DNA of 64,000 nt from Podarcis muralis (GCF_964188315.1 NC_135661.1:77252001-77316000); one strand, 5' to 3'; numbered from the stretch's first letter, positions 6,143-62,552 are shown. The notes: a model not told the origin generated them from the sequence alone. Translations and numbers: made by a program.

Positions 6143-6144
6143 AC

Positions 6145-12389: not shown

Positions 12390-12527
12390 CTATGGTTGTA
12401 GTTCCAGATATCTCAAAGCATTTGGTCTCCTCTCCAGCACATTTGATGGGCGGAAACTTACACTCGGTTCCATCAGGTGGGCAAGTGGAGCATTGCCTTC
12501 CATTCAATGTGGTGTTTCTCCATGGAG
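12390..12527 (-). CDS. Gene 1 exon 4
   Basis: 138 nt, ttccag|CT...ATAG|gtaact; NTTLNGRQCSTC...C...C...C. Confidence 0.9.
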
Positions 12528-15500
12528 CTGGAAGAAAGGTGAGAAAATCAGATTTGGGATGTAAGAAGAACAGCGCTGACAAGGGGATTAGGAAGAAGAT
12601 CACAAAAATTAAGCGCCTCCCATTCTGCTAAGTGTCTCATATGTCTAGGACACACGTTTGACAAGCCAGTACCATGTTTCTTGTCATCTTTGGCTTCATA
12701 CATGGGGGCACCATCTCACCTGAAATGACAGCCCCTTCCAAATTTTGGTCTCCTCCCCATCTTTGGGAGAGGTTCCTCCTGCCCTCTGTCCTTAAGCCGT
12801 CAGGTATTTTAATTGGCCCTAACACTGAAGATCTGCACTCTCCCATTTCCTCACATGCTTCCAATTCTAGGCCAGATTTCCATGGAGCCAGGGACAGAGA
12901 ACCTATAGCGTTTCCACTATTGTCCCATCAGTCTCAGCTAGCCAGTTGCCAGGGATGTTGGGAGTTGCAGTTTGCCATCATCGAGAGCAGGGTTTCCCAA
13001 ACTTGGGTCTCTAGTTGTTTTTTGATTACAATTCCCATCATCCCTGACCACTGGTTCTGCTAGCTAGGGATGATGGGAGTTGTAGTTCAAAAACAGCTAG
13101 AGACCCAAGTTTGGGAAACCCTAATCTAGAAAGCTGCAGGTTCTCCTTCTTTGTAGGGAGAATCTTCTTTGCCCAAAATTTTCAGTCTTGTATAGAGAAT
13201 CTGTTCCTGATGTTTTAGCATCATCCACAAGACCTGTTCATTGAGCATTCCTCCTGATATGCTTGCACAAAACTTACATGGGGGGTTGATTCTATCCCAT
13301 CTTAGTTGAGCATTTGTTCTGATGCACCTAGGGCATTGTTTTTGCCGAAGCAGTCTGGAAGAAGCAGAGGCCACAGTAAAACATCAAATCAATGCCGAGG
13401 TTTCCCTAGGGGTGTGGCAAGCAACAGCATTTCTTTTTTAAGGAAAAAGAAAGGCCACTTCTAAGCTGTCACTATTCCGCAGGTGGATGTCTTCTCATTT
13501 TCCTGCAACCTTTAGTCTAAATCAGGATGAATTTCAGTGACCAGGTTGTCAGCAAGCGACTGATGAAAGGAGTGAGGAAAGGATAAAGAGACTAGCGGGG
13601 ACTTACTAGGGGGCCATGTTGTTTTGCAGGCAGCTCCCACACAGCAATGAGTCTCGATTACTGTTGTTCCAAATAGGCCACTGTTGATGATTTGGGGCCC
13701 TTTGCCGCACAATTTTGATGAGCCGCAACCCTTCTCAAAAACATTTTGGTCTGGAGGGATCAAAAGAAGGCAAATCTCATGAAACACAAGCGATAGCTTT
13801 AGCCTCAATGTGGGCAGCCACCGGCCACACACCACAGCATCTTTAGCAATCATAGCATATGGTCTCAAGGCAGGCCATGGGCCCATCGTGCGCCAGTTTC
13901 TCAATTTCATGTTTCATTAAATCCCTAGCCCACCTCTACCCTGAAAAGAATCCAGGCTCGGAAGCAAGAAAACCACAAAGAAATACAATCAGCAAATAAA
14001 ACAAATGGAAGCCATTCAAGAACAGTCACATGCCCTGAGCTGATAATATCAACGGGGCATCTTTCAGCCATTAAATAAATGCCTAGTTTTAACTTCCTCC
14101 TGGGTGTTAATAATGTGGGAAACAGATGCCACCTCACCAGGGAGAACACTCCAGCACCACTAAGAAGGCCTGGTTGTGGGTCAGTGCCAACTGGGCAGCA
14201 ACTCCCACCAGCAAAGCCATCAGCAGTGGCATTGCAGTTAATAGCAGGAAGCCACTCCTTTAAGTAAGGTACTTGGATCCCAAGCCATTTAGAGCTGGGT
14301 ACTAGATATGTGACAGGACATGGGTGGCGCTGTGGTCTAAACCACTGAGCCTGGGGCTTGCCAATCGGAAGGTTGGCGGTTCGAATCCCCATGACGGGGT
14401 GAGCTCCCATTGCCCGGTCCAAGCTCCTGCCAACCTAGCAGCTCGAAAGCATGTTAAAGTAGATAAATAGGTACCACTCCGGCGGGAAGATAAATGGTGT
14501 TTCCATGCGCTGCTCTGGTTCGCCAGAAACGGCTTAGTCATGCTGGCCACATGACCCGGAAAAACTGTCTGCGGACAAACGTCAGCTCCCTCGGCCAGTA
14601 AAGTGAGATGAGTGCCACAACCCCAGAGTCGTTCGCGACTGGACTTAACTGTCAGGGATCCTTTACCTTTACCTTTTACTAGATATATGCTAGATATGTA
14701 GCAGGCATCATTCTCATCATTTTAGCACTTTTCTCAATCCAAGTCAAGGAAATGCCCTTTGTTTCCTTGCATAGTGCTCAACAAAAGCTTCTCTGCAGAC
14801 AGAAGGTAGGGTAACTGGCTACATTTGGAATCTCCAGGGAATTAAACCACAGCAGGGAACCCAGCTGAACCCTCCTCCCCACCAAGAGGCAAGGTGAGGA
14901 GACTGCCTCACGCAACAGGGTCCCCCGGGGAAGCAGGTGTCAATCTTGCTTCAACCCCTTGTTCCTGATATAGATCTTCCCTCTTCTCTTCTTTCTTTCT
15001 TTTTAATTATTTTTATTAAGTTTTGTTTTGCATAAATCCATAAACATTTTCCATCTATAATTCAAACTATACCCAAGTAACATAGTAAAAGAAAATAAAG
15101 AGAGAGAAAAAAAATACATAGCCACTAATTATCTTCCGCACCATCCATTCCCCATACTTGTATTTAATGATCAAACCTTAAGAATTCTAATCTTTTGAAT
15201 TGACTTCTGTCCACCACCTCAATTCGGGTCATTTCCCCCCCATTCTTTAACTGCCTTCTTTAGATGTTTTCCATTCCTTGGTACTGTATTAGCTTGTTGG
15301 TTATTATAATTGTTTTGTCTTCTGCAAAAATTAATAAAGGTTTTATTTGAGAACAGTGTTTTTCTAGGTGATTTTTATAGCACTCCCATTCCTTAGTGAA
15401 CTTTTGGCTTGTTCCATTCCTAATTGTTCCTGTCATTTTAGCGAACTCAATGTATTCAAATAGCTTTAGTTGCCATCCCTCCTTTGTTGGGACCTCTCCT

Positions 15501-18500
15501 CTTCTTCCCTAGTGGGAATGGGTGGCGGGTTGACATTTGGGGGTCTTCCTCAGATGCCCAAATGTCTTGGCCCTGCCCTGCTCCCCACCCAGGCAAGAGG
15601 ATGTTACGCATTTCTTCAAATCTGCTGATGGCTGTAGGTCATCTCCACTTACCTAACCCAGAAATGCTGACACTCAACACCCGAGTAACACATGTGTCTT
15701 GCTCCTGGGTGCATTGCATCATAGGTCCTGAGCAGCGGCTTGTTGGCGAAGTACATTGCTCACATTCTAGAGCCATTCCTGAAAGCACACAAAATAAGAA
15801 AAGTCAATGTTGTTAATTCTCCTTCCTCTCCTGCTCCCGCTTTTTCTTTACCCAGAGTTAACAACTCAAGATGCACCAAAACAAGGTGTACTCAAACCCT
15901 GGGCAGGTTCCCTCTGGCTAAAGTCATTACAGACCCTCCAAGTGTCCCAATTATCAGAGACGGTCCTGTATTTACAGAAGCTGTCCCGGTTTCTTATTAG
16001 AGGTCCCTCTTTTCCTTAGGACATCCCTATTTTCATCAGATAAATGCTGGAGGGTATGGACAACCACTAAACAAAGGAGATAAATACGGTAACCATACAA
16101 CCTTTAGAAGACATCGGACGACAGCCCTTTATAAGGAAGTTTTGTTTTTTTAAAAGTTTAATGTTCTATTTATTTATTTTTAAAATTGTGAATGAATTAA
16201 TTTTATTATTTCGGTCACAGACCAGTTCCAGCCCACATAGAATATCAAGGAAGTCATAAAACACAATAAAGTCATAAAACATGATAAAGTCATAAAACAT
16301 CTCCCATTCCAACAAAATTCCATACATTTTAGAAATTACCTTTCTTTTATTTAATAATTCTTTATCTAATGTTGAAATTTCACTTGCAAAACCTTTTTTT
16401 TTTTTAAATCTGCTTTGAACACCTCATTTAGTTAGTGGTACTGAATCCACCCTGTTAGGTGGCGCTTTATTTCCTCATAATCTTTCAGTTTCAATTTGTT
16501 ATCTTTTTCTTCTAATAAATCCTTATATATGTCCCAGTTTGATTCCATATTTTTTCCTTTTTACTGCTATCGCCTCTAAGGGTGAGAACCACTAAGGCAT
16601 TTTAGGTTCTAATAACTCTTTATACTTTTCCCATACTCTATTTTGGCATGCTCTGGTCCATGGGGTCACGAAGAGTCGGGCATGACTAAACGACTAAACA
16701 ACAACAACAAATTTTAAAAAATGGGGGAAGATTGCCCAGAGTTGTTGTTGAGGTTTTTTTACAGGAGGGAGGGGGGTTTGCCTGAAATCACTTGACCTAA
16801 TGGCTGACTCGCCCATGTTGTAACAGCCTCCTAACGCCTGACCCCTCGCCGGGAGAAGCAGCCTATTGCCCACCCAATTGCCACACCAACACCCAATCAA
16901 CACCACCCCTTGCCCCAGACATCAATAACACGCTGCAGACCATTTACGGCTCGCGGCATTGACCAATCCCACGTCCCCCCTAGGCAGGACTGGTCATGTT
17001 GTGCGGATGCCTGATTATCGTCTTCCAAAGCAACTATTCTATTCCGAACTTAAAAATGGAAAGTGTAATGCTGGTGGTCAACAAAAGAGGTTTATAGACT
17101 GTTTCAAGGCAAATCTTTAAAAAATGTAGTATAAACACCGACAACTGGGAAACACTGGCCTGCGAGCGCTCCAGTTGGACAACAGCCTTTAACAAAGGTG
17201 TCATGGGCTTTGAAGACTGAAACTCAGGACACAAGGGAGAAACATGCTAGGAGGAAGGCACGCCTGGCAAATCCACACCATGATCAACTCCCGCCCAGAA
17301 ACCAATGTCCCCACTGTGGAAGGATGTGTGGATCCAGAATTGGCCTCCACAGTCACTTATGGACTCATTGTTAAAACTGTGTTTATGGAAGACAAACTTA
17401 CTTGGCTACGAGTGACCGCCAAAGAAAGAAGACCCATGTATAAGACAACCCCCCTATTTTAAACACAATTTTTCAGTAAAAAAAAACACCTAGTCTTATA
17501 CATGGAAAAGTATGGTACTTTTCTGCCAGAGTATCAATGAAATCTCAACCCGCCATCCCCCCCCACTCTCCTCATCCCAATTATCCTCTTCAGCCAGTGA
17601 GGTCCCCAGGGTAGGAAGGCTATTAAGCTGGGAGACAGTGAAGTGCTGGGGTCAGTTAGCAAACAGAAACCCATCAATTTCCATTGGTTTGGGAGGTCTG
17701 GAGACACTGATTGCCTGCACAGTCTCTTTTTCATATTACTTGCATGCAGAGTCCTGATATAACGTAATTACAGCAGCTTCCACTCCAGCTCTCCAGCTCC
17801 TGTGCCACAGTCAAAATGAGAAATCATTTCCTTGGTGATGAGAGACATTCAGGGTGGCTTAGGGTGTGGTTAGTTGTCTTTGGTTGGCTGTAGTGAGAAT
17901 AGTTTCTTCTCCTTCTCCTTCTCCTTCTCCCTAATTGTTTTAACCAATTCATAAACTAAGAACTTATACATTGACCACTAATAATGAAACATATGGTTGT
18001 AGATATTTCTTTCCACATTTATTATGCTGTTTTTTGTGATATACAGTACATGAGAAAACTTGGTATACTTATTTGTATAACATTCTTGTATATAAAAACC
18101 CAATAAATAAATAAATAAAATTCCAGATGTTTAGTTTAATCATATCACTTTGTTTCCCTCCTCTCCCAGTGACGGACTGAGGTTGAATCCTGACAAGACA
18201 TAAGTACTGTTCTTGGGGGACAGGGGGCAGGCGGGTGTGGAGGACTCTCTGGTCTTAAATGGGGTAACTGTGCCCCTGAAGGACCACGTACGCAGCCTGG
18301 GAGTCATTTTGGACTCACAGCTGTCCATGGAGGCGCAGGTGAATTCTGTGTCCAGGGCAGCTGTCTCCCAGCTCCATCTGGTACGCAGGCTGAGACCCTA
18401 CCTGCCCATGGACCGTCTTGCCAGAGTGGTGCATGCTCTGGTTATCTCCCACTTGGACTATGCGCTCTACGTGGGGCTACCTTTGAAGGTGACCCAGAAA

Positions 18501-21045
18501 CTGCAATTAACCCACAATGTGGGAGCTAGACTGGTAACTGTGAGTGGCCGCCGAGACCATATCACACCAGTCCTGAAAGACCTACATTGGCTCCCATAGG
18601 CGCCGACTCCATGGGGCTTGAGGGGGCCCGAGCCCCCTCAAAAATTCGTTTGGGGGGGCTCCGCCCCCCCAATAATCTCCGGCGCCCCTCCAGCAGAGCT
18701 CCATCGCCGCCCCTCCCCCAGCCCAAAATGCACAGGGAGGGGCGGGCTGCATGCCTCCTGCCCTCCCTCCCGAGCAAAAGCTCCACCCAATTTCCTTTGG
18801 AGCTGATTAATAGGCGCAGCACGCTCTCCCCTATTCGCTCACGAGGAGGCGGCGCCACTTTATTTGCATATTCATGAGCTTATTTATTATTCATGAGCTT
18901 TCCCGGGCCCCCCCAATATTTTTTATAAGTCCGCGTCCCTGTTGGCTCCCATTACATTTCCAAATACAAGTCAAAGTGTTGGTGCTGACCTTTAAAGCCC
19001 TAAATGGCCTTGGCCCAGTATACCTGAAGGAGCATCTCCACCTCCATCATTCTGCCCAGACATTGAGGTCCAGCTCCAAGGGCCTTCTGGCGGCTCCCTC
19101 ACTGCAAGAAGTGAGGTTACAGGGAACCAGGCAGAGGGCCTTCTCAGTAGTTGCACCCACCCTGTGGAACGCCCTCCTATCAGATGTCAAGGAAATAAAC
19201 AACTATCTGACTTTTAAAAGACATCTGAAGGCTGTTTAGTGAAGTTTTTAATGTTTAATGCTGTATTGTGTTTTTAATATTTGGTTGGGAGCCACCCAGT
19301 GTGGCTGGGGAAACCCAGCCAGATGGGTGGTGTATATTTAATAAATTATTTTTGTTATTATTACTCCTTGCTGGTTGCAGCTAAGAGTAGGAATTGGGCA
19401 ATAGTCAGCCAGGGCTCCAGCTAAAGAGCAACAATACAGAACAGAAAAATTCAGTCAAGGTCCAGGACTTCAAGGCCCGGCAATGATTTTATTTATTCCA
19501 TTTTTCTGCAAACTACTTAGAGGCTTTATTGCAAAACCAATTGTGTTTTTTAAAAATAAAACCAACACCATATATGATGCAAATTCCTTATGCAACTGTC
19601 TCACTAAATTGGGGGGGGGCTACCTCACAAGCTGTGAATTGCATCCAGCCCCTCAAGTGCTTTTTTGGGGGGGGTCCCCCACCCCCAAATGTAGTTTTTT
19701 AAAAAGAAATTTCATTTTCTTATAAAAAAAAATGACAGCTGCTATCCCTCTCTTTCTATGAGTCCATGATCATGATTCCAAAGCTGTTAATTTGGGGTGG
19801 GGGGGGGTTGAGGGTCCCAAAAATGTTCCATTCTTAATTTTTATATCAGACTGCTTCCATAAGTCTCATGCGCTGCCAAAAGATTCTGTGGACCTCCAAG
19901 AACACCCCCCCAAAAAAAAATTATGCAAAACAAATGTGATTCTAATAGGTACCCCCGCTGAGATGCCAAATGTTTTGTGCCCCTGCAAGGCCCCCTCAAA
20001 TCTGTCCATTTTATTTTTTCTCTCACAGATTCATTGTGATTCGAAGATGTTTTTTCCTGACCCCACCCGAACCTCACGTTGTCATTTTAAAAATAAACCA
20101 AACAGGCCACACCCATTCCTTAACTTTGGACACACACACTTTGACGTGTAACTCTCAGAGCTATATGCTAGTGCACATTGTCTTTTTTAAAATAATAAAT
20201 GCTTTTTATTCGTTTTTCACTTCACACAAACAAACAAAGTACAATCATCTTCCCACATTCTTTCCCAACACTCTGCTGTGCATTGACTTCCCTCCCTCCC
20301 TTCAACAGGTTTTCTTAATTCAGTCTCCTTTCCGCAGTTTCTTATTATATCCAGTCCCCGTCGTAAGATTTATTTCATTCCTGCTAGTGTTTTCAAATCT
20401 CTACAGTTATTATTTATATAATCCATAAGTTTACTCCAATCTCTTTGGAATTGTGTTTCCTCCTGGTTGACTGTAGTGTCAACAGCCCTTGGAAAAACTA
20501 CATTACCACAGGGTATGTTTGAGAGGCATTAAACTCTCACCTCTTCCATCTCTCTGACTGCCAGACGGGTGAGAAAAAAGCACAGACTCCCAAACCCTTG
20601 GAATGCTCAGATGTTACAACACATGGAAAGTATGTGCTCGCCTAATGCCTCCCTCTCTCTTTTTTTTTATTTTTATGCCTTATCAGGAAATTGTATCTCA
20701 CCGAATCAGCAAAGCTGTGGCAGGTTGTCATAACAGGATGCTTGGCTTCGCTTGTCTCTTTAGTTCCAGGCTTGGCTCTTTTCTCCCCCCAGCCAAGCAT
20801 TTACTCTAGGAAATCAGCATGCATATTATATCACTGAAGACGGATGCACTTGTGGAACGCCCTCCCATCCAATGTCAAGGAAATAAACAACAACCTGACT
20901 TTTAGAAGACATCTGAAGGCAGCTCTGTTTAGGGAAATTTTTAATGTTTGATTCTTTATTGTATTTTTAATCTTTTGTTGGAAGCTGCCCAGAGGCAGCT
21001 GGGGAAACCCAGCCAGATGGGCAGGGTATAAATAAATTATTATTA

Positions 21046-21102
<57 letters not shown>

Positions 21103-21372
21103 CCCTTAGCACCCATCGTTTCCCCATTTCAATATATTGTTGCAAATGCTAATGAGTGGGTTCCTGCAAAAGTTCTGCACCCTCTTTGTTCCAACCCAGG
21201 GAGTAACGATGATTGTTTTGCACAGAGGACTGACTATCTGTGAGATGAAACATGCAGCATTTTTTTTCTGGTGCTGCAAAGCCTCCCCCCCTACCCCACC
21301 CCCAAAAAAGTTTCCATACTCACCCAGGGCTATGAAGGCAGCAAGGAGGCTGATGAAAAGAGGAGTCTGCAT
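12390..21372 (-). CDS. Gene 1: PLA2-inhibitor-gamma / Ly6-PLAUR two-domain three-finger protein, 3'-incomplete; exons 21372-21324, 15778-15653, 13750-13607, 12527-12390
   Basis: MQTPLFISLLAAFIALG MALECEQCTSPTSRCSGPMMQCTQEQDTCVTRVLSVSISGLD QNVFEKGCGSSKLCGKGPQIINSGLFGTTVIETHCCVGAACKTTWPPT PWRNTTLNGRQCSTCPPDGTECKFPPIKCAGEETKCFEISGTTTIG. All introns GT-AG, phase 1; 10-Cys domain 1. Confidence 0.88.
12988..13123. mobile_element. Palindromic hAT-type MITE
   Basis: Terminal inverted repeats gggtttcccaaacttgggtctct / agagacccaagtttgggaaaccc and internal symmetry. Confidence 0.75.
13607..13750 (-). CDS. Gene 1 exon 3
   Basis: 144 nt, ccag|AC...CTA|gtaagt; KGC...C...HCCVGAAC. Confidence 0.9.
14316..14677 (+). 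mobile_element. Sauria SINE
   Basis: ggtggcgctgtggtctaaaccac head, ggttcgaatcccc B-box, tagataaataggtacc core, (ACCTTT)n tail; tactagatat flanking duplication. Confidence 0.9.
14995..15490 (-). mobile_element. L1 3' fragment
   Basis: T-rich tail and ORF2 C-terminal remnant (EGWQLKLFEYIEFAKMTG). Confidence 0.7.
15653..15778 (-). CDS. Gene 1 exon 2
   Basis: 126 nt, ttcag|GA...TTAG|gtaagt; LECEQC...C...C...C. Confidence 0.9.
15930..16058. mobile_element. Short non-autonomous DNA element (related copies at 28548-28658 and ~61505-61650)
   Basis: Inverted termini cagaccctcca / tggagggtatg; internal gtccc/gggac motifs recur in the other copies. Confidence 0.6.
16140..16711. mobile_element. L1 3' fragment (minus) followed by a BovB 3' tail (16648-16711, plus)
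   Basis: T-rich L1-type 3' UTR; gctctggtccatggggtcacgaagagtcgg...(CAA)n. Confidence 0.6.
16980..17432 (+). mobile_element. RTE-clade LINE 3' fragment (not BovB)
   Basis: Degenerate TGHVVRMPDYRLPKQLFYSEL...CPHCGR.CGSRIGLHSH coding remnant. Confidence 0.7.
18165..19345 (+). mobile_element. L2 LINE 3' fragment interrupted by a hAT MITE
   Basis: LGVILDSQL...ISHLDY...HITPVLKDLHWLP...KVLVLTFKAL RT C-terminal remnant; ggctggggaaacccagccagatggg tail. Confidence 0.85.
18595..18941. mobile_element. hAT-type MITE, 347 bp
   Basis: 8-bp TSD TTGGCTCC at 18587-18594 and 18942-18949; imperfect terminal inverted repeats. Confidence 0.85.
20850..21100 (+). mobile_element. L2 3' end with (ATT)n tail
   Basis: tggaacgccctccc...gaagacatctgaaggc...cccagccagatggg, then ATT repeats. 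Confidence 0.8.
21324..21372 (-). CDS. Gene 1 exon 1 (signal peptide)
   Basis: 49 nt, ATG...CTGG|gtgagt; MQTPLFISLLAAFIAL. Confidence 0.8.
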
Positions 21373-21879
21373 CCTTCTAGATTTCAATTGAGAGCTGTTC
21401 ACAAGCCTTGAACACACACAAAACCAATCCAACCCACACTTCTGCCTCCTTGATGCAACTGTGTATCTGTGTATGTGTAGTTGGGAGGTGGGGAACTGTT
21501 CTGTAGAAGAGATCAGTCAAGCTTCCCGGAAAACAAGGTGGAGACGCCAAAGCACCTCCCCAGTGGGATACAGGCCAAGTGGGTAGTAGATCAACTTTGC
21601 AAACGGGAGGTCTCCTATACAAAACCATGCATCCCTCTCGGTTTGCTTTGATATTCATCAGCTATAGAAAACAATGTTAAAAGCATGAAGGGCTGAACAC
21701 AGCCAAGAAAGCTCTGCTCACCACTGGGAAATATGCAACAGCAACAGCTACTATTCTAGGCACAGCCAACTTTTATGGGACTGACTTGTGACTTGTAACT
21801 TCATTTTTGTGACTTGTTTTTGTGACTGTGTAGAACCCAGTTCAGCTACAGATTGATTGATTGATTGATTGATTGATTG

Positions 21880-22709
21880 TGTGACTGCAGAAATGGATAA
21901 AAGCCCCCCATCCAAATAATGACTATCATCAGTGCAGGTAAGGAAAAAAAATAATTTTAATTTTTATCATCTACAATACTGTCTTATTTATTTTATAATA
22001 CAGTACATTGCCAACAAAGGTCCGTATAGTTAAAGCTATGGTTTTCCCGGTAGTGATGTATGGAAGTGAGAGCTGGACCATAAAGAATTGGCTGATCGCC
22101 AAAGAATTGATGCTTTTGAATTATGGTGCTGGAGGAGACTCTTGAGAGTCCCATGGACTGCAAGAAGATCAAACCTATCCATTCTGAAGGAAATCAGCCC
22201 TGAGTGCTCACTGGAAGGACAGATCCTGAAGCTGAGACTTCAATACTTTGGCCACCTCATGAGAAGAGAAGACTCCCTGGAAAAGACCCTGATGTTGGGA
22301 AAGATGGAGGGCACAAGGAGAAGGGGACGACAGAGGACGAGATGGTTGGATAGTGTTCTCGAAGCTACCAGCATGAGTTTGACCAAACTGCGGGAGGCAG
22401 TGGAAGATAGAAGTGCCTGGCGTGCTCTGGTCCATGGAGTCACGAAGAGTCGGACACGACTAAATGACTAAACAACAACAACAACACAGTACATTGATTA
22501 TTGCTTTCATTTTATGGATCAATGGTATTGTCTTGTTAGATAGGAAAATCCATGTTAAATTGCTGTGTTAGGGGTTGTTTTTAAAAGTCTGGAATGGATT
22601 AATCCATTTTGCATTACTTTCTATGGAAAAGCATGCCTTGGTTTTAGAATGCTTTGGTTTTGGAACAGACTTCCGGAATGGATTAAGTTTGGGAACCAAG
22701 TTACCACTG
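21880..22709. mobile_element. Tc1/mariner (Tigger-like) non-autonomous element carrying a BovB insertion
   Basis: Right end ...aagttaccactg-TA; left boundary approximate. Confidence 0.55.
22011..22485 (+). mobile_element. BovB (RTE) LINE 3' fragment
   Basis: IDAFELWCWRRLLRVPWTARRSN...RWLDSV; (CAA)n tail; 11-bp TSD ACAGTACATTG at 22000-22010 and 22486-22496. Confidence 0.92.
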
Positions 22710-22783
22710 TATTTGTGCTGAATCTTCCACCATTCCGTTTATTGCATGTCCTCAAATGCAAGTGTTACAAGAGAGGGAGGAAA

Positions 22784-22835
<52 letters not shown>

Positions 22836-22854
22836 AAATAAATAAATAAATAAC

Positions 22855-23470
22855 TAACCAGAAGGCCCTCGGAGCTGGACCTCAGTGTCCAGGCTGAATG
22901 ATGGGGGTGGAGATGCTCCTTCAGGTATGCTGGGCCGGGCCACTTAGGGCTTTAAAGGTCAGCGCCAACACTTTTAATTGTACTCGGAAAAATCCTGGAA
23001 GCCAATTTAGGTCTTTCAGAACCAGTGTTATATGGTCTTTGTGGTTACTCCCAGTCACCAGTCTAGCTCCCGCATTGTGGATTAATTGTAGTTTCCGGGT
23101 CACCTTCAAAGGTAGCCCCACGTAGAGCACATTGCAGTAGTCCAAGTGGGAGATAACCAGAGCATGCACCACTCTGGCGAGACAGTCCATGGGCAGGAAG
23201 GGTCTCAGCCTGTGTACCAGATGGAGCTGGGAGACAGCTGTCCTGGACACAGAAGTGACCTGCGCCTCCATGGATAGCTGTGAGTCCAAAATGACACCCA
23301 GGCTGTGCACCTGGTCCTTCAGGGGCACAGTTACCCCATTCAGGACCAGGGAGTCCCCCTCACCCACCCACCTCCTGTCCCCCCAAAACAGTACTTCTGT
23401 CTTGTCAGCCTCAATCTGTTAGCCGCCATCCATCCCCCAACCACCTCCAGACATTCACAGAGGACATTCT
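22855..23470 (-). mobile_element. L2 fragment
   Basis: Same family as 18165-19345 (ORF 22921-23367); preceded by (TAAA)n. Confidence 0.85.
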
Positions 23471-23986
23471 CCGCTATTCACCACCCACTCTCTCCATGCC
23501 ATGGATAAGAGAGGGAGAGGAAGGAGCAGGGTGGGGCACAAACTTAGTCTGCTTGATGGGAGACAAGCTCAGCCGCAGTGCCTCAGGGGAAACAAAGGGG
23601 AACATAAAAAAGCTTGAGATGGAGAACATGAGGGGTGCGGCCTTGCAACACCGTTCAACAACAAGGAGAACCAGCACACATTTCTCCCCCCTCCTCCATG
23701 GAGAAACAGGGAACATGTTGGGATACCTAGGGCCCTAAATAAGGATCCCAGTGTTGGGACACTTGGCCCTCATTCCCTGCCAGAAAGACCATCTCCAGGC
23801 TCTCCCCCTAAGACCCACGGGGGGGGGGGGCAGACAGCAGTGGCATAGCATGGGTGGCCAGCAGCCAGGGCCACATGGAGAGGGTGTGGGAGGAAAGGAA
23901 ATGGACAGAGTACACATGGACATTCAACTGCCTAATGGCCTCTGCATCACCCAGAAGCTGCAGAGATGAGAGAAAAAGAGTTGTTC

Positions 23987-24520
23987 TGTTGTCTGAAGAG
24001 GTCAATTCCTGGTTCACATGGAGAAGTCATTCATTTGTTGAATGGTCTCTTTAAATTTGAAGGTTCATTATTGTTCCACAAAATGTGCGTGTCTTTAAGG
24101 GCCAGAGCAAATAACGTGACCCAGTTTTACAGCTGTGAAGAAGTATAGCAGGTGCTGTTAAGTTGTGTTAATTAAGCTGTGTCAGCAATTGGGTATAGTA
24201 TATAAAGAGCTCTGACCAAACTGCGGGAAGTAGTGGAGGACAGAGGTGCCTGGCGTGCTCTGGTCCATGGGGTCACGAAGAGTCGGACACGACTGAACGA
24301 CTAAACAACAACAACAACAACAAATATAAAGAGCAGCACCTAGCTCTCTCAGTCCCCGGGGGTTGGGTTGGTGGATAGGTTATGCTTATTGATATGTTTA
24401 GTGTAAAAGGAGTTTTTGTTTTTGTTATTAAAACCTAGCTAAAGTTATTTTGCGTTCCTTGTAATGTGTGGTCTCCCCAGCACGCTTTCTGCAGCGCAAC
24501 TAATCTGCAAATAGCCAACA
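23987..24520 (+). mobile_element. Solo LTR with a BovB tail inserted at its TATA box
   Basis: TGTTG...CAACA termini; 4-bp TSD GTTC at 23983-23986 and 24521-24524; BovB 24211-24323 with 11-bp TSD ATATAAAGAGC. Confidence 0.75.
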
Positions 24521-24857
24521 GTTCTGTTGTCTGAAGAGGTCAATTCCTGGTTCACATGTCAATTCCTGGTTCACAAGTCATTTTCAACAGAGCCCAGCAA
24601 CGGAAGCACACACATCTGTATTGAGGCTGCACTGGTTGGTGAAATTTTGCACCCCTAACCATTTTGCTCCTGGGGCAACCATCCCTGTGTCCCCCCCTCC
24701 CACATACTATGCCACTATGCCACAGCCAGGGCCAGGAAAAAAAGGTTTAACAAAGGAGTGGTTCCAAGCATTTCTCCGCAAAGTTAAGGCCAAACAAGTA
24801 CAAGCCAAATGCAATTCTACTTTTCCTATCTGGACATATAACATTGATGACTTACAG

Positions 24858-24993
24858 CAGGCTTCCTCAACCTCGGCCCTCCAGATGTTTTTGGCCTACA
24901 ACTCCTATGATCCCTGGCTAGCAGGACCAGTGGTCAGGGATGATGGGAATTGTAGTCTCAAAACATCTGGAGGGCCGAGGTTGAGGAAGCCTG
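24858..24993. mobile_element. Palindromic hAT-type MITE
   Basis: TIR caggcttcctcaacctcggccctccagatgttt with its exact complement; near-perfect 8-bp TSD (a/c)cttacag. Confidence 0.85.
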
Positions 24994-25272
24994 CCTTACA
25001 GCATGTCTGATTTGCCTAATCTTGGGGTAGTTGATTCTCATGAGACTAAGAGATTCTGTTTTATACTTTGTGCATACCAGTTATCAAAGTCACCAGGCTA
25101 CGCCAGAGCTTCATCTCTTCAAATGACACAGATCACCCATGCAAATGTTCTGCAGCCTCTTTAATCCAGCCCTGGCAAATGGGACTAATTTGGAGAGGGA
25201 AACCTCTGTTGAAGTGGCCGGAAACATGTACCTTCCTCATTTTAGTATGCTGTTAGCCAAAAATATAGAAAC

Positions 25273-27707: not shown

Positions 27708-27715
27708 TCTAAACT

Positions 27716-28746: not shown

Positions 28747-29018
28747 TCAAGTGAAGCGCTTTATCAGCCAGGATGAGAGACTGGGTGGAACGCAGAAGGA
28801 GGACACTGGAAGCAGCAGTGTGCAGAGGAAAAGGGTCCCCAGCCAGGAGTGTTGGTGGTGAAGACAGGCAGCATTCTTCGCAGAAGGGGCTGCGTAGCAT
28901 TCCCTGACTGTGGACAGTGTGTAAGTGTAAACACCAGCAAAAACAGCCATCCCCTTGCTATGCTCGCAGACGCTGGGCACAGCACAACCTCTGGCTGCAA
29001 ACCTTTCATTCGCAGCAA
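28747..29018 (-). CDS. Gene 2 exon 5 (coding part)
   Basis: 272 nt, long polypyrimidine tract then ttgcag|TT; ARGC...C...C, hydrophobic tail, TGA. Confidence 0.88.
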
Positions 29019-32000
29019 CTGCAAAGCAAAAAAAAAAGAAGAGGCAGAGTCATGTCTCATGGATCCTTCATTTGCTTTTGTTTTTCTTTAATCTCCACAC
29101 ATGGTGTTTTGTTCTGAGCTCTGTTAAGCTCCGGTCAGTGTCATTGCCTTGGTGTAAGCCGAAACCTTCGAGTAGAATTAAATCTGATCTACCCTGCTGT
29201 AAAACCAATGAATTTTCTTTGGGCTCTTTCTGGTTCTCTTGAACTCCCCGGGCTTCTAGGCCCCATCTGGGCTATCCATTTTAAGCAGTATCAAGTCGCT
29301 TTAAACATCCACAGATTCCCCCAAAGAATCCTGGGAGTTGTCATTTGTTAAGGGTGCTGAAAGGAGACTCATGTTCCCCAACAATTCCCAGAATAGTTTA
29401 ATAAATCCATCCCTCTTTTCAGGGAACTCTGGGGACTGTATCTGGGAGGCAGAGGGAATAAGGAGTTTGCTAAGAACTCTCAGCACCCTTAACAAACTAC
29501 AGTTTCCAGGATTCTTTGGAAGAAGCCAGGACTGTTTATAGTGGCAAAAGATAGACATAATATTTTACAATGACAGGAAGAAACATTATGGACAGAATAA
29601 CTGCCACACACAGGAAGAACTATGAGAGAGTTTGAATGCTTCTCCTGTAGCTTTATAAATCATTTAATGTGTCAGTACGAATGGAAGTCGTTAAAACTGC
29701 AGTTGCTGTATAAGGGATTGTTATTTTGAGTGCAGCATAACTGAAATTTATAAGATTTTGGAACGCTGAAATAAAGTAAATCATCCAACCATCAATTCTA
29801 GCTCGTGGGGTGGGGGGGGGCACCCAATTTGTCATCTGAATGATTGGTATTACTACTTGTATTATAATTTGGCATTGTTATAATGAGGCTGTTATTGTAA
29901 TTGAAAACTAATAAAAATTATTATCAAAAAAGAGTACTGTTTATAGTTGTATGATACTGCTTTAGCCCTGCTGCTGAACAGAGTTTTTGGGGAAAGGAGT
30001 AAGTTACAGCAGCGGGATTTACCCCCGTTTAAATTGCATTAGCTTCTTAGAGTTTATATTTGTCTCTGTACCACAAACTCACTGATGGCAACTCTCTTAA
30101 TTCATCCTCATGTGGAAAATAAACCCATCACCATCCCAGCTGGGTCGCTCTGGCCAGTTTGGTGTACTGTAGTTCTTAAAGTGTGGGACTAGGAGCTAGG
30201 AGATTGTGGTACAAATCCCCTCTCAGCTGTGAAGCTCATTGGGTGACCTTTGGCTAGTCATCTGCCTCTCAGTCTAACTTGCCTCACAAGGTTGTTGTGA
30301 GGAGGAAATGGGGAGGAGGGAAACTCTGAATGGAGCTCCTTGAAAAAAAGGTGGGGGTATAAATGCTTTTTAGCATCCTAAAAAGCAGAGACATCACCTT
30401 GCCAACAAAGGTCCGTATAGTTAAAACTATGGTTTTTCCAGTAGTGATGTATGGAAATGAGAGCTGGACCATAAAAAAGGCTGATCGCCAAAGAATTGAT
30501 GCTTTTGAATTATGGTGCTGGAGGAGACTCTTGAGAGTCCTATGGACTGCAAGAAGATCAAACCTATCCATTCTGAAGGAAATCAGCTCTGAGTGCTCAC
30601 TAGAAGGACAGATTGTGAAGCTGAGGTTCCAATACTTTGGCCACCTCATGAGAAGAGAAGACTCCCTGGAAAAGACCCTGATGTTGGGAAAGATGGAGGG
30701 CACAAGGAGAAGGGGATGACAGAGGACGAGATGGTTGGACAGTGTTCTTGAAGCTACGAACATGAGTTTGACCGAACTGTGGGAGGCAGTGGAAGACCGG
30801 AGTGCCTGGCGTGCTCTGGTCCAAGGAGTCACAAAGAGTCAGACACGACTAAACGACTAAACAGCAACAAATGCAATAAAAAATAAGCATTTAAAGCAGT
30901 ATCATGCCACCTTAAAGAGTTGCGGCTTCCCAAAAGCACAGAACTACAATTTGCAAAATTCCCACAAAAGAGAAGTAGACTATTAAATCACTATGAGAAC
31001 TGTAGCTCTGTGAGGAAAATAGGGGTTCTCCTAGCAAAACTCGGCAACAAACTACAGCTCCCAGGATTCTTTGGGGGAAGCCATGACTGTTTAAAGTGGC
31101 ATGATACTGCCTTAAACATATAGTGCAAATGGAGCTGTGTACTAGATTCTTAATTTCAGGGTTGTGGGTTAAAGCCCCACATTGGGCAAAAGATTCCTGT
31201 GTTCCGGGGGGGGGGGGGGGTTAGACTCGATGATCCCATGGTGTCTTCCAACTGATTCATGTCAGTTGAATTCAGCTCTCTTCCTCAGCTTTGTTCCCTG
31301 CTGACTTACCTTCTACTGATTCCAGAATGCCTGTAATGTGAACGCAATGGTCCTCTGTTCCAGTACAATCCATGGACCCTTCAGCTTCACACGAATGCGA
31401 ATCTTTCGCATAGCAAGCTGGGCAGGTGAAGCCGTTCCTTGTCGTATTGACTGGGGGTACTGGGAGGAAGGAAAGGGAATACAATCACAGGAGTCAGAAT
31501 GCAACAGAACGAACCCAAGAAAGGATGGATCAATGAACCACCCAAAGCCCACACTATTCAACGCCTTTCCTCCCAGGCTTCGGCAGGTAGAAACACATCT
31601 GTAGCAAGATCCACTGGGAAGAGCAGGGCTAGGATCCAGCAGATTTCTGCCTGAGCTGGCAGTTTCCCAGCACAGCCAGGCGGTGCTAGCTTAGCTCCCT
31701 CATCTTCACCTCGGCCAGAGATATGACAGCATTTCTCTCCCAACCTGGCTCAGCCAGGCGCCAGTTGGGTGAGCTGAGCTGGGTGAAGGCTGGACCAAAG
31801 AGGGGAGAGTTAGGCTGGATCCTATGCCCAATCAGCTTGGTCACGTGACCTGGCAACATGGCATAAATTATGCAGAAAAAAAGGGTGCAGTAACTCAAAC
31901 CCTATTTTACAGGCTTGTTTTCCCCACTGCCAGGCTTAGGTCATCTCAGACAACCATGGCACCTGAATCAAATTTGTATTTTGTGTGCTTTCTGCTGGCT

Positions 32001-33067
32001 TAATTTACACTGGAACTGTTTAACACCCACTGTACAATTAGTCCTCTGCAGGAGGGGGAATTTGGTCTGTTTTTGTTTTATTTTGTATTCTTCGTTTCTA
32101 GTTTTCTGGTGTGAACCACCCTGGGGTCTTCAATCGAAGGGCAGTACAGTTGTACCTTGGAAGTCAAACAGAATCCATTCTGGAGGTCTGTTCGAATTCC
32201 AAAACGTTTGGAAACCAAACCGCGGCTTCTGATTGGCTGCAGGAAGCTCCTGCAGCCAATCGGAAGCCACAGAAGCCTGACGGGCGTTTGGCTTCCGAAA
32301 ACCGTTCAAAAACCTGAACGCTCACTTCCGCACTTCCAGGTTTTGATCATTCGGGAGCCGATTTGTTCAGGAGCCAAGGCATTTGACATCCAAGGTATGA
32401 CTGTATACAAATTTAATAAATAATAATAAAATGGTGGTGGTGGTGGTGGTGGTGATGATGATGATGATGATGATGATGGGGAGGGAAGAGTTGCAGCATG
32501 ACTATGGTACTCACAGTCATTTATCCATTTTGCCTGGGGGCTTCGAAAAGGTTGCCAGCCCCTGCTTTAAAATAAGCAAAAGAGCTCTATGGTGTCCTTG
32601 TCATTTATTACAGCACCCCCTTCAGGCCTGGAGACGCATCTTCAAAGCCAGGCAAGTACAGGAGATACATACATTTAGCCATTTGCTTCTGGCAGCCCTC
32701 TCTCTTACAGCACACGGCGCTTCTTCGCAGCATGATCCCAGGCCCAACGGTCATGGTCCGGATGCCAGCTTTGCAAGCTCTGTGCCCAGTGCAGGACTTC
32801 AAGGAACCTGCAAATGCCACAACGCCTAGGCGAAGAAAGAAAGAGTTTGAAAAGGGAAGGAAACGCTGATAGATCAGTGCAGGGCTGGGCAGAAGGTGAA
32901 TCAGAAATAACTATGAGGTCTCCAGAGGTCCATTCACACATTACACCGAACTATCTCTGCACATGCATAAGTTTACGTGTTGATTTTTAATGTTTGACAT
33001 TTTATTAAGTTTTTATATGTGCTGGTAGCTGCCCAGGGTAGCTAGGGAAACCCAGTCAGATGGGCGG

Positions 33068-33118
<51 letters not shown>

Positions 33119-35120: not shown

Positions 35121-35177
<57 letters not shown>

Positions 35178-58168: not shown

Positions 58169-61100
58169 CTGCAGGAATTGAGAAGAATGTTGATTTGGTT
58201 TAAGCTGAGCAATTGACATGGAAATGGGCACTAAAATTCCACTTGGTTCTGCTAGATTTCCCGAAGTGAAATCGTGTGAAAGATTGCATAAAACGTGAAA
58301 GTTATCAGGTAATCAAACGTCAGGAAAATGGAAGAAAGAGCTGTCTGAATGAGGCCTTACCCTGTTGTACGGACACATCATAGTAGACACATTTGCGCTC
58401 CCAGCCGTGGCAGTTTAATGTCTCCGTGGGGCGGCACCTTGGATTCTGCGAGAAGCATCCAGGACACTGTAAGCCATTTGGCCTGGCCCCTAGCCGTGGC
58501 ACTGAGAGCAAGCACAGAAACAGGGAAGAAACACCTCATCTCAGATCCATTTTCAGATTTTAGATAAAGATAGTTAACCATCCTCCAGTCATTCCCCTTT
58601 GGGCTTCTGTCACAATCCTCAAACATTTCACCAAAGGAGCAACCACCCAACTTTGTGGCCCCTTCATAGGGAATTCTGTGAGCCCTCGGGCACCCAGGGC
58701 CCCAGGGCCCTGGCATCTATGATGCCACACCAATCTCCCAGTGGTGCAAGATTCCAGTGCTCTCACCCAGGGTTCATGTTTCCTTTGGAATAATGGGCAG
58801 CAGAGACAGTGGCGCCTTTATGGTATATGGGTTGTTGTTGTTGTTGTTTTGCACATATATACAACCTGAGCCTATGATGGAGGGATTCATAGCACTAACA
58901 TGCCAAGAGGGTCTTGCTTCTCCCATTGCCACAGCCTTGGATTGAAGCAGAAACCAGGCATGGCTCTGTCTCTCTGGCTTCCCAGCCTGCAACTTTGCTT
59001 CCAGCTTCTAGCTCTCACACAACTCTGCCCTCTGCTATTTGTCTTTCTAACTACCAACAAGTCAAGGGAGGGGGACCCAACTATTTATTGTCCAGCACAG
59101 AACCACCTTCCCTAAGCAGCCCATACTTAGAAGGCCATGACCTCAAGCCAGAAGCTAGGCAGGTTGTTCCAGGAATTGAATCTGTGCTGGATCCAGGAAT
59201 TAGAAGGGGGCTCAGGCATACAATCTGCCCTCCCCGCCTCCACTCAACACTAGAGTATGGAGGAAGAGTGTAGCCATTGTGGCTAGTAGCCACAGATAGC
59301 CTTATTCTCCATGAATTTGTCTATATCCTCTTTTAAAACTGGAGGCCATCACTGCCTACCATAGGATTGAGTCCCACAGTTTAACTATGTGCTTACATGA
59401 AGAAATGCTTCCTTGTATCTGTCCTCAACCTGCCAATGTTCAGCTTCAATGTGTCATAGCTGTGAGGAGGAGGAGGAGTTTGGATTTGATATCCCGCTTT
59501 ATCACTACCCAAAGGAGTCTCAAAGCGGCTAACATTCTCCTTTCCCTTCCTCCCCCACAACAAACACTCTGTGAGGTGAGTGGGGCTGAGAGACTTCAGA
59601 GAAGTGTGACTAGCCCAAGGTCACCCAGCAGCTGCATGTGGAGGAGCGGAGATGCAAACCCGGTTCACCAGATTACGAGTCACCACTCTTAACCACTACA
59701 CCACACTGGCTCTCTGTGAGCATATTCACACATTCACACACACCAAAAGAAGGCAAGTGGGATCACTCCTGCTAGCTGTACGCTTGCGAAACATGGACCA
59801 CTTATAAATACCATCTTCCAAAGCAACTACTCTATTCCCAACTTAAGAATGGTCACCGTAAAAAAAAAAAAAGGGAATTATAGGGACAGAACTACTGAAA
59901 CTGTACAGAAACTTATTCATGTATGCTACTACAGCAGCAAGAATGTTACTTGCTCCAAAATGGAAAGAATAAGAATTCCCAGCAAAAGAAGAATGGATAC
60001 AAAAACTTATGGAATATGCACAAATGACAAAACTTACCTAGGAAAAAAGAAATCAAGATAACAAACTTTTTAGAAAAGAATGGAAATGGTTTATTGAATA
60101 TTTACAAACAAATTTGTATTCATCCAGCTTAACACCCAAAAGCCTGGGGAGAAGGTAGAGTTGCAATCCTGTTCCCACTGTGCACAATCAGCCCCGCCCA
60201 CCCCCCAGGTTTTGAAGGTGAGAACATGATGGTTCCCATGTGTCCAGAATTTCCCAGTCATAGCTGGCAAGTGGCTGTCAGAAACTGTCCAGGCAGAAAT
60301 CGGCTAAACGTCCAGGGAAATCTGGCCGTATGCTAACCCAGCGATTCCCCCTTAAAAATAGCTCATTCAGAGCTTAACAGTTTTGAAAGAAAAAAAAGAG
60401 GGGGAAAGCTCACCAACGTTTCTGTCGAGAAATATGGCAAACCTAATGGCTGTACTCTAGGGACATATTCAAACTATACACAAGCACATTGCTTCCCCCA
60501 AAGAATCCTGGGAACCATCCTTAACCCATCATGGAGCTACCATCCCTGGCACTCTTAGCAAACTACAGTTCCCTAGATTCTTTGAGGTGGGGAGACATGT
60601 GCTTTAAATGTGACCTAGTTCATACTAGATGTTCTCAGAGGTCATTACTGCCATTGCAATGAAACGTGTTACAAATCATGGGTGCTGGTTGAGATTGATT
60701 CACAATTCTCCATGGCAATGTTTCCCAGGAGCAACCGGTGCCCCTTGGAGCAATGCTGGGGTGCAGTTTGGTAATGCGATTCACCCCATCGAAGAGGAAG
60801 AGCTTAGAAAAGTCCTGCCAAGGTGCTTACGTGTCACTGATCCAGCATTGCAGAGATCTTTGTGGCAACACTTGGCAGCTCTCCGTTTGCGCTGGTTCGG
60901 GAAAGTGAAGCCCATGGGCGTCGGAGGGCAGAACTTTTTCTTGGTGCAGCCTTTGAACGTGGAGAACCATCGGTCATTTCCTGGGGTTTTTCATGGAGGA
61001 AAGGCAAAAAGGAAATCAACAGCAACGTCAATCTGAGTACATTAATTTTTGTTTACTTACTCATTTATTTTTGACATGCATATCCTAGAATAGAATCATA

Positions 61101-62552
61101 GAGTTGGAAGAGACCACAAGGGCCATCGAGTCCAACCCCCTGCCAAGCAGGAAACACCATCAGAGCACTCCATCAGAGCATCAGAGATCCTGATTTGCTT
61201 TTTAAATGCAAGCACACACACAGAGAGAGGCACTACCCATTTTTGCCTGTGGCCATGCCCAGACCTTGGCAAAGGGCCAAACAATCACCCACCAACGATG
61301 TTCTCCGAGGTGAAGATAAGGCAGGCATCTTCAGATAGCGGGCAGGTATAGGGCGTCCCAATGCACGAGTCACTGTTGCTGCTGCTGCAGCGTTCACAGT
61401 TCAAGCAAACTCCTGGAAGGGAAACGGCAGAATTAAATAAAGGGCTGAGTTCCAGTCAGGTGGTAGCAAGTGAGCTTTATTCAGGGCTGGCCCAAGACAT
61501 TTTGTATACCCCCCCCCCCCCAATATTTCTCCAATGAAAATAGGGATGTCCTAAGGAAAGCGAGACATTCCAGGATCAAATCAGAAACTTTGGGTGGCTT
61601 CTGTAAATCTGAGTTTGTCCCTAAAAAACAGGGACAATTGGAGGATCTGGTTTTGGCACCCTGGGTAAACCACAAAATGGCATAACAAACCACAAAATGG
61701 AGGAGGAGAATTCCCTGGATGCCAAGATCCAGCCAAGTGCTGTTTGGTGAGCGAACCCCAGTAGAGCTATAAAATCACAAAATTTGTAGCAAACTAAAGC
61801 ATGGAAATAAAGGTTTTTAGATCCTTAAGATGTGTCCTTCAAAGGTCCTTCCAAAGTTCACCTCTTCCCCTAGCATAGAAAAAGACCATAGATTTGGTCT
61901 TACAAACCCTCCAAAGGTTATATTCATGGTGCTTTTCCATACAGCATTAAGAAAACGTTGCACAGGTAGTAAAACCTGCCTTAGTTACAGTGGTGAAAGT
62001 TCCTAAATTATTGGTATACAAACACAACAATGGCTTGTAAGAGCCATGTGGCCTGAACTGTAGCAACCAGCTCAAAACCTCTTCACTAATTGAACTTCTC
62101 TGGTAGATTGAAGTAAACAAAGGCCTTTGATTGCCTTCCTCCCAAGGTGAGAGGGAGTGGCCTAACTAAGCCTTGCAGACCAGTTTACTCTATGACATTA
62201 ACCCCTTCATGCATTAATTAGACATAAGCATGTTGCTTATATGAGGCTGGTTACCCCACAGTTTGTACTACAACTCCCATCTGTTGGGAGCTATTGGCAA
62301 AGGCAGGAGTAAATAATATCAAATTAGATAGGCAAATAATCTAACATGGTGTAAGGCAGCAAGAGTAGCCAGATACTGTTGAACTTCAACTCCCATCATC
62401 CTTCATCAATGGGCTGGGGCTCATGGGAGCTGGAATCCAACAGTGCCTGGAATGCATTACACTGGCTGCCCCTGGCCTAAGGAGTTAAGTCCTACTGACC
62501 TACCTGTAACAGGCAGGAGAATGAAGAGGTAGACGATCAGAGACGTCTGCAT
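58023..62552 (-). CDS. Gene 5: secreted, basic two-domain three-finger PLA2-inhibitor / PINLYP-like protein, 201 aa; exons 62552-62504, 61412-61293, 60980-60831, 58501-58361, 58168-58023
   Basis: MQTSLIVYLFILLPVTG VCLNCERCSSSNSDSCIGTPYTCPLSEDACLIFTSENIVG NDRWFSTFKGCTKKKFCPPTPMGFTFPNQRKRRAAKCCHKDLCNAGSVTL PRLGARPNGLQCPGCFSQNPRCRPTETLNCHGWERKCVYYDVSVQQG DEIYTYAKRGCGTKHACVSGPRTLGIPGLYVEIWKNAMCTPAVKYMH*. AATAAA at 57852-57847; closest paralog is gene 4. Confidence 0.92.
58361..58501 (-). CDS. Gene 5 exon 4
   Basis: 141 nt, ctcag|TG...CAGG|gtaagg. Confidence 0.9.
59466..59711 (-). mobile_element. MIR-like (CORE-type) SINE
   Basis: Minus strand gagccagtgtggtgtagtggttaagagt...ggttt gcatctcc...gtgaccttgggctagtcac; related copies at ~30170-30330 and ~42110-42280. 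Confidence 0.75.
59850..60110 (+). mobile_element. L1 ORF2 3' remnant
   Basis: YATTAARMLLAPKWKE..IPSK remnant. Confidence 0.65.
60831..60980 (-). CDS. Gene 5 exon 3
   Basis: 150 nt, cccag|GA...ACAC|gtaagc. Confidence 0.9.
61293..61412 (-). CDS. Gene 5 exon 2
   Basis: 120 nt, tccag|GA...GTTG|gtgggt. Confidence 0.9.
62504..62552 (-). CDS. Gene 5 exon 1 (signal peptide)
   Basis: 49 nt, ATG...ACAG|gtaggt. Confidence 0.85.

Follow-up and report, generated by a model that had tools for sequence, protein, structure and literature searches.

A stretch of 64,000 nucleotides from the lizard Podarcis muralis (GCF_964188315.1, NC_135661.1:77252001-77316000; hereafter, the window) contains five genes for two-domain three-finger proteins of the Ly6/uPAR superfamily, all on the minus strand and lying in a tandem row between positions 12390 and 62552. 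The gene models were built with cysteine-rich pieces as tblastn queries against the window, after which acceptor and donor sites were read in frame; in all five models the acceptors are without exception AG and the donors GT. A cysteine-density scan of stop-free stretches across the window showed that such cysteine-rich pieces are confined to the minus strand. The genes are numbered along the plus strand: gene 5 occupies 62552-58023, gene 4 56134-49134, gene 3 44935-39005, gene 2 37776-28747, and the in-window part of gene 1 21372-12390. An original prediction, made from the sequence alone, had described five co-oriented genes sharing a five-exon, phase-1 plan. The number, orientation and intron phase are borne out, but no more than four exons of gene 1 lie in the window; the array start placed at 12390 is a true exon boundary, although exon 4 of gene 1 ends at this base and the gene itself does not. 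The predicted exons proved to be almost base-perfect for genes that the open reading frame (ORF) tracks had missed, and the resulting models of genes 5, 4 and 1 correspond to RefSeq proteins.

The five genes share a common architecture. Exon 1 encodes a hydrophobic signal peptide, LU domain 1 is formed by exons 2 and 3, and LU domain 2 by exons 4 and 5. Because exon 1 measures 49 nt (55 nt in gene 3) and exons 2, 3 and 4 (114-126, 144-153 and 138-150 nt, respectively) are all multiples of three, every intron is in phase 1. Paralogous exons match each other in tblastn with E values of 1e-6 to 1e-27, and the open frames of genes 5, 4, 3 and 2 run to 201, 204, 211 and 245 residues. Pairwise identity among the paralogues is 25-39%, with the exception of genes 4 and 5, which are 60% identical. 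The cysteine framework expected of the superfamily (an LxCxxC start, 8-10 Cys and a CCxxxxCN end) is present, with departures in gene 3 and in genes 1 and 2. The 10+8 cysteine scaffold of the original prediction holds for genes 1, 2, 4 and 5, with the last three cysteines of gene 1 counted on the RefSeq protein; gene 3 departs from it with 11 cysteines in domain 1 and 7 in domain 2. Also as anticipated, genes 3-5 retain the CCxxxxCN motif at the close of domain 1, whereas in genes 1 and 2 the closing Asn is absent, and an NTT sequon stands just before domain 2. An extra cysteine directly precedes LxCxxC in genes 3-5 and in most of their relatives; it falls in a low-confidence N-terminal part of the structure model and may be a residue of the signal peptide.

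Gene 5 begins with a start codon and signal peptide in exon 1 (62504-62552; 16 codons plus 1 nt). Exon 2 (61293-61412) supplies the first half of LU domain 1, and exon 3 (60831-60980) its second half, with an RKRR motif and CCxxxxCN. The first half of LU domain 2 is in exon 4 (58361-58501; 5 Cys), and its second half in exon 5 (58023-58168; 3 Cys and the stop codon), which adds no hydrophobic tail. The model is identical across all 201 residues to P. muralis XP_028596087.2. A comparison with public RNA runs (X1, X9, X23 and X24) covered gene 5. Absence of spliced expression had been named in advance as one outcome that would speak against the original prediction, and for gene 5 the contrary was found: the four introns of gene 5 (58169-58360, 58502-60830, 60981-61292 and 61413-62503), with CT..AC ends on the plus strand, are all spliced out in contigs of run X1. 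At the joint of exons 1 and 2 (61412/62504) in X1 one letter separates the two halves, consistent with the boundary as modelled if one base differs, and the joint of exons 3 and 4 (58501/60831) is also found in a contig of run X9, from a separate study.

Some features of the RNA data at gene 5 stand apart from this transcript. Two intronic segments, 59360-59872 and 61070-61240, are covered at RNA depths ranging from hundreds to more than 100,000, with many loose ends; these are abundant transcribed repeat families, outside the gene 5 transcript. One X1 contig of 2344 nt spans exons 4 and 5 together with 95 nt of 3' untranslated region to 57928, followed by approximately 1,960 nt that do not match 57650-57927; a GT is lacking where the match breaks off. 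A structural variant, an unusual 3' end or chimerism of the contig could account for this.

In gene 4 the signal peptide is encoded by exon 1 (56086-56134), the two halves of domain 1 by exon 2 (54018-54134) and exon 3 (53003-53152; RERR motif and CCxxxxCN), and those of domain 2 by exon 4 (51507-51647) and exon 5 (49134-49291; stop codon). The model is identical over 204/204 residues to P. raffonei XP_053255610.1. The RefSeq protein XP_077788627.1, which also corresponds to gene 4, has two extra residues (VP) at the exon 2 junction, consistent with use of an acceptor 6 nt upstream. The products of genes 4 and 5 had been described as basic and free of N-glycosylation sequons, and this is correct: the isoelectric points of the mature proteins are 8.5 and 8.95, and neither contains N-x-S/T. 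Genes 3 and 2 are mildly basic too (8.1 and 8.2). A basic motif stands before the CC of domain 1 in both genes (RKRR at 60880-60891 in gene 5, RERR at 53052-53063 in gene 4) and most members of the clade of genes 4 and 5 described below, from iguanians to python, have it in the conserved form R-x-R-[RKS]; the gecko version starts with H (HKRR). It seems to be a basic patch or a site of processing that has been conserved, rather than a lacertid novelty.

Gene 3 has the longest signal peptide exon (exon 1, 44881-44935; 18 codons plus 1 nt), which is colinear with that of its Sceloporus orthologue. Domain 1 is divided between exon 2 (42990-43106) and exon 3 (42580-42732), in which a CCC run supplies the 11th cysteine and CCxxxxCN is present. 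The first half of domain 2, in exon 4 (40703-40840), has only 4 Cys, the second having been lost; exon 5 (39005-39177), which runs to the stop codon, encodes the second half, a NET sequon and an acidic tail. No P. muralis RefSeq counterpart of gene 3 was retrieved. The product is 67% identical to an orthologue from Sceloporus and 62% to one from Pogona, both colinear with it and without gaps at the exon junctions. The 11+7 pattern is common to these two proteins and a further fragment, so the cysteine swap is old and has been kept. With one cysteine thus shifted from domain 2 to domain 1 in this clade, an inter-domain disulfide staple might be formed, an arrangement undescribed for two-domain three-finger proteins.

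The signal peptide of gene 2 is in exon 1 (37728-37776), with another in-frame ATG 9 nt upstream at 37785. Exon 2 (35285-35398) and exon 3 (32673-32825) encode the halves of domain 1, which ends CCxxxxC-Q; exon 4 (31310-31459) contains the NTT sequon and the first half of domain 2. The second half is in exon 5 (28747-29018), which continues into a hydrophobic stretch of approximately 19 residues, 13 more residues and the stop codon.

Gene 1 is represented by exon 1 (21324-21372; signal peptide), exon 2 (15653-15778; first half of domain 1), exon 3 (13607-13750; second half, ending CCxxxxC-K) and exon 4 (12390-12527; NTT sequon and the first half of domain 2 with 5 Cys), the last exon in the window. 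Together these are an exact prefix, the first 152 residues, of P. muralis XP_028598276.2. No exon 5 was found below 12390 by tblastn with the paralogous exon 5 peptides, by a regular expression for the cysteine spacing, or by tblastn with full RefSeq-type orthologues. Because the RefSeq protein includes the 69 residues of the exon 5 part at its end but the window holds none of them, we infer that this exon is situated beyond the window start, across an intron 4 swollen by retroelement insertions. The open frame directly after exon 4 was considered as an exon and rejected as intron read-through. Annotations of P. lilfordi list three gene 1 products: one with the tail, one of 177 residues whose last exon is different, and one of 181 residues that continues into intron 4, where the frame is also open in the window.

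Two retroelements are found between exon 4 of gene 1 and the window start. Downstream of that exon, on the plus strand at 6933-11745, is a full-length long interspersed nuclear element (LINE) with a 340-residue ORF1 and a 1251-residue ORF2 encoding AP-endonuclease and reverse transcriptase; both ORFs are intact, the element is possibly still active, and the strong purine skew at 6-12 kb is due to it. On the minus strand at 843-6485 is a Ty3/gypsy (chromodomain) long terminal repeat (LTR) retrotransposon with a single uninterrupted ORF of 1562 residues for gag, protease, reverse transcriptase, RNaseH and integrase (1426-6114). Its LTR pair is marked by the same 183-nt stretch at 1115-1297 and 6227-6409, with an identical 61-residue translation. 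Both elements are presumably inside intron 4 of gene 1.

Elsewhere, microsatellites of the (GT)n/(CA)n and (GA)n types occur at 44950-45000, 45570-45660, 46330-46390 and 53740-53800, between genes 3 and 4 and in intron 2 of gene 4. Rfam models applied to the whole window at gathering scores returned only two tRNA-like matches, 39293-39364 (+) and 39766-39821 (-), both in intron 4 of gene 3; no hammerhead was returned, including at 54842-54879 in intron 1 of gene 4. A sixth gene upstream of gene 5 was considered and rejected: the weak match at 63526-63651 (E 0.012) is beside sequence judged by eye to resemble a tRNA-derived short interspersed nuclear element, and it has no partner exons.

Family membership was assessed with Pfam profiles at their gathering cut-offs (24.8 bits for UPAR_LY6, PF00021; 22 bits for PLA2_inh, PF02988). 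The joined translations were compared locally with retrieved proteins (alignment, identity and tree), and the database searches used single exons or retrieved full-length proteins. For the full-length profile tests, gene 5 was represented by a protein equal to it except for one signal-peptide residue (P0034), gene 4 by one 97.5% identical to it (P0028), gene 3 by its orthologues P0038 (Sceloporus) and P0008, and gene 1 by a protein 95-96% identical to it (P0001). The UPAR_LY6 cut-off was passed by the stand-ins for gene 5 (47.9 bits), gene 4 (36.6) and gene 1 (42.2), and by both gene 3 orthologues (28.7 and 31.3). PLA2_inh gave a more divided result. Gene 1 orthologues scored above the cut-off (31.0, 24.6 and 23.9 bits), as did the Sceloporus orthologue of gene 3 (28.3), with the Pogona orthologue below it (17.6); the stand-ins for genes 5 and 4 gave no match to PLA2_inh at an E value of 0.01 or better. 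Single exons from the window reached 12-24 bits, just under the cut-offs of UPAR_LY6, PLA2_inh and CD59, because each of them is half a domain; exon 2 of gene 2 alone scored 17.9 bits against PLA2_inh.

The AlphaFold model of the gene 5 stand-in P0034 comprises two all-beta domains (predicted local distance difference test, pLDDT, 91.3; predicted template modelling score, pTM, 0.81). Its best Foldseek matches were uPAR, C4.4A, CD177 and TEX101, with E values of 6e-8 to 3e-4, and the model of a gene 1 protein, weaker in confidence (pLDDT 69.6), returned the same matches. A sequence search of the PDB gave nothing significant (CD59 at E 0.035, TEX101 at E 0.22). At the superfamily level, the array consists of two-domain Ly6/uPAR three-finger genes. 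RefSeq labels for these genes and their relatives read PINLYP-like, gamma subunit B-like and NAI-like. The C-termini divide the set further. The products of genes 3-5 end shortly after the last cysteine, with no hydrophobic stretch; that of gene 2 and the gene 1 orthologues contain, at or near the C-terminus, 15-mers with a Kyte-Doolittle mean of 2.1-2.3. The gene 1 orthologues close with small residues, followed by a short spacer and then 19 hydrophobic residues, which is the usual shape of a glycosylphosphatidylinositol (GPI) anchor signal. The family named by the original prediction (PLI-gamma, PINLYP and SPF-like, where PLI stands for phospholipase A2 inhibitor) is thus right as to the two-domain Ly6/uPAR class, both by profile and by fold, but the idea of one homogeneous PLI-gamma-like set is not supported, and a reading of the whole array as secreted inhibitors or pheromones is weakened because genes 1 and 2 carry hydrophobic tails.

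The age of the array was approached with a three-row profile of exon 3 from genes 3-5, searched against 1.84 billion cluster representatives. Among the 23 matches, the named ones include Rhineura, Phrynosoma, Pogona, Paroedura, a turtle and an alligator, under the names PINLYP-like or PLI-gamma-B-like; no amphibian sequence was identified among the 23 (10 named, 11 inspected). The profile also matches long proteins with 7-15 repeated LU-like half-domain matches (P0007, P0010 and P0013), one of which is named as a 2604-residue 'mucin-17-like' protein of the fish Gouania willdenowi. A word-index search with a Rhineura protein added Lacerta, Sceloporus, Anolis, Elgaria, Hemicordylus and Python, and the cluster of the python protein also contains proteins from ten other snake species. 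A corresponding search with a gene 1 orthologue returned three lacertid proteins only, which is a limit of the index and not proof of restriction.

A maximum-likelihood tree was calculated from 28 rows, with the multi-repeat fish proteins and short fragments left out and without authentic snake PLI-gamma, verified mammalian PINLYP or amphibian SPF among its rows. Genes 4 and 5 belong to one clade (support 100/99) with proteins from a gecko, iguanians, an anguid, an amphisbaenian and a python. Within it, gene 5 pairs with a 200-residue Rhineura protein (93/86), and gene 4 is nearest, after Lacerta, to a different Rhineura protein of 204 residues; the duplication therefore appears older than the split between lacertids and amphisbaenians. 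Sceloporus and Pogona proteins join gene 3 (92/80), and 'PINLYP-like' proteins of a turtle and an alligator cluster with genes 3-5. Gene 1 groups with lacertid proteins only, and gene 2 is placed on a long branch without a close relative. The rates of change also differ. Between P. muralis and P. raffonei the mature products of genes 5 and 4 show no difference (100% identity), and their identity to those of Lacerta is 97.8% and 97.3%, respectively; the corresponding values for gene 1 are 96% and 80.6%. Across five lacertids the cysteines of gene 1 are all conserved, as are its signal peptide (1 of 16 sites variable) and its tail, while 26-38% of positions per exon vary in the exons coding for the ectodomain. 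An expansion particular to this lizard, as the original prediction could be read, is not supported, the gene 4/5 group being present in a gecko, iguanians, an anguid, an amphisbaenian and snakes, and the gene 3 group in two iguanians. As judged from these comparisons the array stems from old duplications, not from a recent lizard-specific burst, and signs of fast protein evolution are seen in gene 1 only.

We are therefore confident that the locus is a tandem cluster of five genes with two LU domains (2D-TFP genes, for three-finger proteins of two domains) arisen by old duplications, of which genes 3-5 are probably secreted and genes 1 and 2 probably surface-anchored. The products are all expected to pass into the secretory pathway and to form two disulfide-locked, beta-sheet three-finger domains. 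By analogy with the disulfide pairing of CD59, domain 1 would hold five disulfides and domain 2 four. Genes 5, 4 and 3 would give rise to proteins of approximately 200 residues without a hydrophobic tail, presumably secreted, in 'PINLYP-like' orthologue groups that extend across squamates. Genes 2 and 1 are the divergent members, in which the last exon adds a hydrophobic C-terminal segment, most likely a GPI-anchor signal, to yield cell-surface proteins. The products could then bind partners through their finger loops, soluble in the case of genes 3-5 and tethered in the case of genes 1 and 2. By analogy with snake PLI-gamma, phospholipase A2 (PLA2) may be counted among the candidate ligands. 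For mammalian PINLYP, a role in type I interferon signalling is reported (PMC8740751). The roles in innate immunity, venom resistance or gland signalling offered in the original prediction are conjecture.

Several observations weigh against this account of the locus. Orthology with mammalian PINLYP is at most putative. The cysteine pattern is 10+8 here, as against 8 cysteines in the first domain of the mammalian multi-LU proteins (PMC6337849). The conserved neighbourhood of the amniote PINLYP group comprises XRCC1, ETHE1, PHLDB3, LYPD3 and PLAUR, and there is no non-LU gene in the window to serve as a flanking marker. For gene 2, searched exon by exon, no orthologue was retrieved in any species, and its Pfam match is at the exon level, with 20.6 bits for UPAR_LY6, below the cut-off. 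The tails of genes 1 and 2 look like anchors from hydrophobicity alone, and that of gene 2 could possibly be transmembrane, since 13 residues trail the hydrophobic stretch. Finally, the exons of gene 5 have zero reads in two bulk RNA-seq runs of the same species (X23 and X24); the expression of this gene is real but, because of these two runs, must be regarded as restricted to some samples.

A more specific proposal concerns gene 1 and is, at best, a tentative one that we consider rather unlikely: a fast-evolving, possibly lacertid-restricted, GPI-anchored relative of snake PLI-gamma, with finger loops under diversifying selection. The variability of the ectodomain exons against a constant scaffold hints at such selection. 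If the proposal were true, the gene 1 product would be a surface receptor or decoy in an immune or reproductive arms race. Soluble forms of it would also arise, since the P. lilfordi annotations show alternative 3' ends.

It is unlikely that the array encodes plasma PLA2 inhibitors of the snake PLI-gamma type, that is, proteins made by the liver and secreted to neutralise venom or endogenous PLA2. The RefSeq names 'gamma subunit B-like' and 'NAI-like' point in this direction, as do the PLA2_inh scores above 22 bits of gene 1 orthologues (31.0 and 24.6) and of the Sceloporus orthologue of gene 3, and genes 3-5 have no anchor tail. However, the stand-ins for genes 5 and 4 fail to match that profile, the Pogona orthologue of gene 3 is under its cut-off, and gene 1, the best matcher of all, ends in a GPI-signal-like tail, unlike a plasma protein.

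We consider it highly improbable that gene 1 or gene 2 is a decaying pseudogene, as might be supposed from the lack of an in-window exon 5 in gene 1, with two large retroelements after exon 4, and from the long branch of gene 2 and the failure to retrieve its orthologue. Both genes nonetheless have open reading frames with all scaffold cysteines and splice sites intact. Moreover, the RefSeq gene 1 models of P. muralis and P. raffonei include exon 5, the former matching the window exactly over exons 1-4, and all gene 1 cysteines are conserved in five lacertids.

Least probable is a lineage-specific, fast-diversifying expansion for chemical signalling in femoral or cloacal gland secretions, comparable to amphibian SPF: although the paralogues differ strongly in their loops (25-39% identity), gene 5 is expressed in some samples only, and the 2D-TFP family includes the SPF pheromones as well as several genes highly expressed in reproductive tissues of the green anole (PMC11659521), the divergence is old, with orthologues of genes 3-5 in other squamate families, genes 4 and 5, at 97-98% identity from Podarcis to Lacerta, do not resemble fast-evolving pheromones, two of the five genes look membrane-anchored by their hydrophobicity, and a word search found no Ly6, uPAR, PLAUR or PINLYP term in a sand-lizard femoral-gland proteome study (article and two supplementary files) or in a marine-iguana study (main text). 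A search of the literature on lizard PINLYP-like or PLI genes found no relevant paper.

The five genes of the window are thus best regarded as an ordinary gene cluster, because at least three of them are in RefSeq and three fall into orthologue groups that reach beyond lacertids. Multi-copy tandem clusters of two-domain three-finger genes are found across vertebrates, with functions that are mostly unknown (PMC11659521). With genes 5, 4 and 1 already RefSeq models, and tandem 2D-TFP clusters already described, this is a known kind of locus, and a specialist would not be surprised by it given the multi-copy clusters reported across vertebrates (PMC11659521, PMC4839075). Its importance beyond annotation is small. 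What it offers is a contrast within one locus between genes 4 and 5, which are slow, conserved and predicted to be secreted, and gene 1, which is fast, anchor-like and matched by the PLI-gamma profile; this could aid the study of how soluble PLA2 inhibitors or pheromones arise from anchored Ly6/uPAR proteins.

Of the systems to which the array can be compared, the closest are the RefSeq lizard proteins whose sequences equal those of the gene 5, gene 4 and gene 1 products, fully or nearly so, and which represent the same genes. The amphibian SPF genes share the two-domain three-finger architecture and occur as multi-copy tandem clusters on one chromosome (PMC11659521), but genes 4 and 5 differ from them in evolving slowly. 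Snake serum PLI-gamma likewise has two tandem three-finger units behind a signal peptide, and the PLA2_inh cut-off is exceeded by gene 1 orthologues and by one orthologue of gene 3; it differs from the array in that the gene 4 and gene 5 stand-ins fail to match the profile and in that genes 1 and 2 have anchor-like tails. The mammalian multi-LU proteins have 8 cysteines in the first LU domain (PMC6337849), in contrast to the 10+8 pattern of the lizard array, and among them uPAR, C4.4A, TEX101 and CD177 are the best predicted-fold matches of genes 5 and 1. Their cluster at human 19q13 (PINLYP, LYPD3/C4.4A, TEX101, CD177, PLAUR and LYPD5) resembles the array in its tandem organization, in the presence of at least two LU domains, and in the combination of some secreted with some GPI-anchored members (PMC4839075, PMC6337849).

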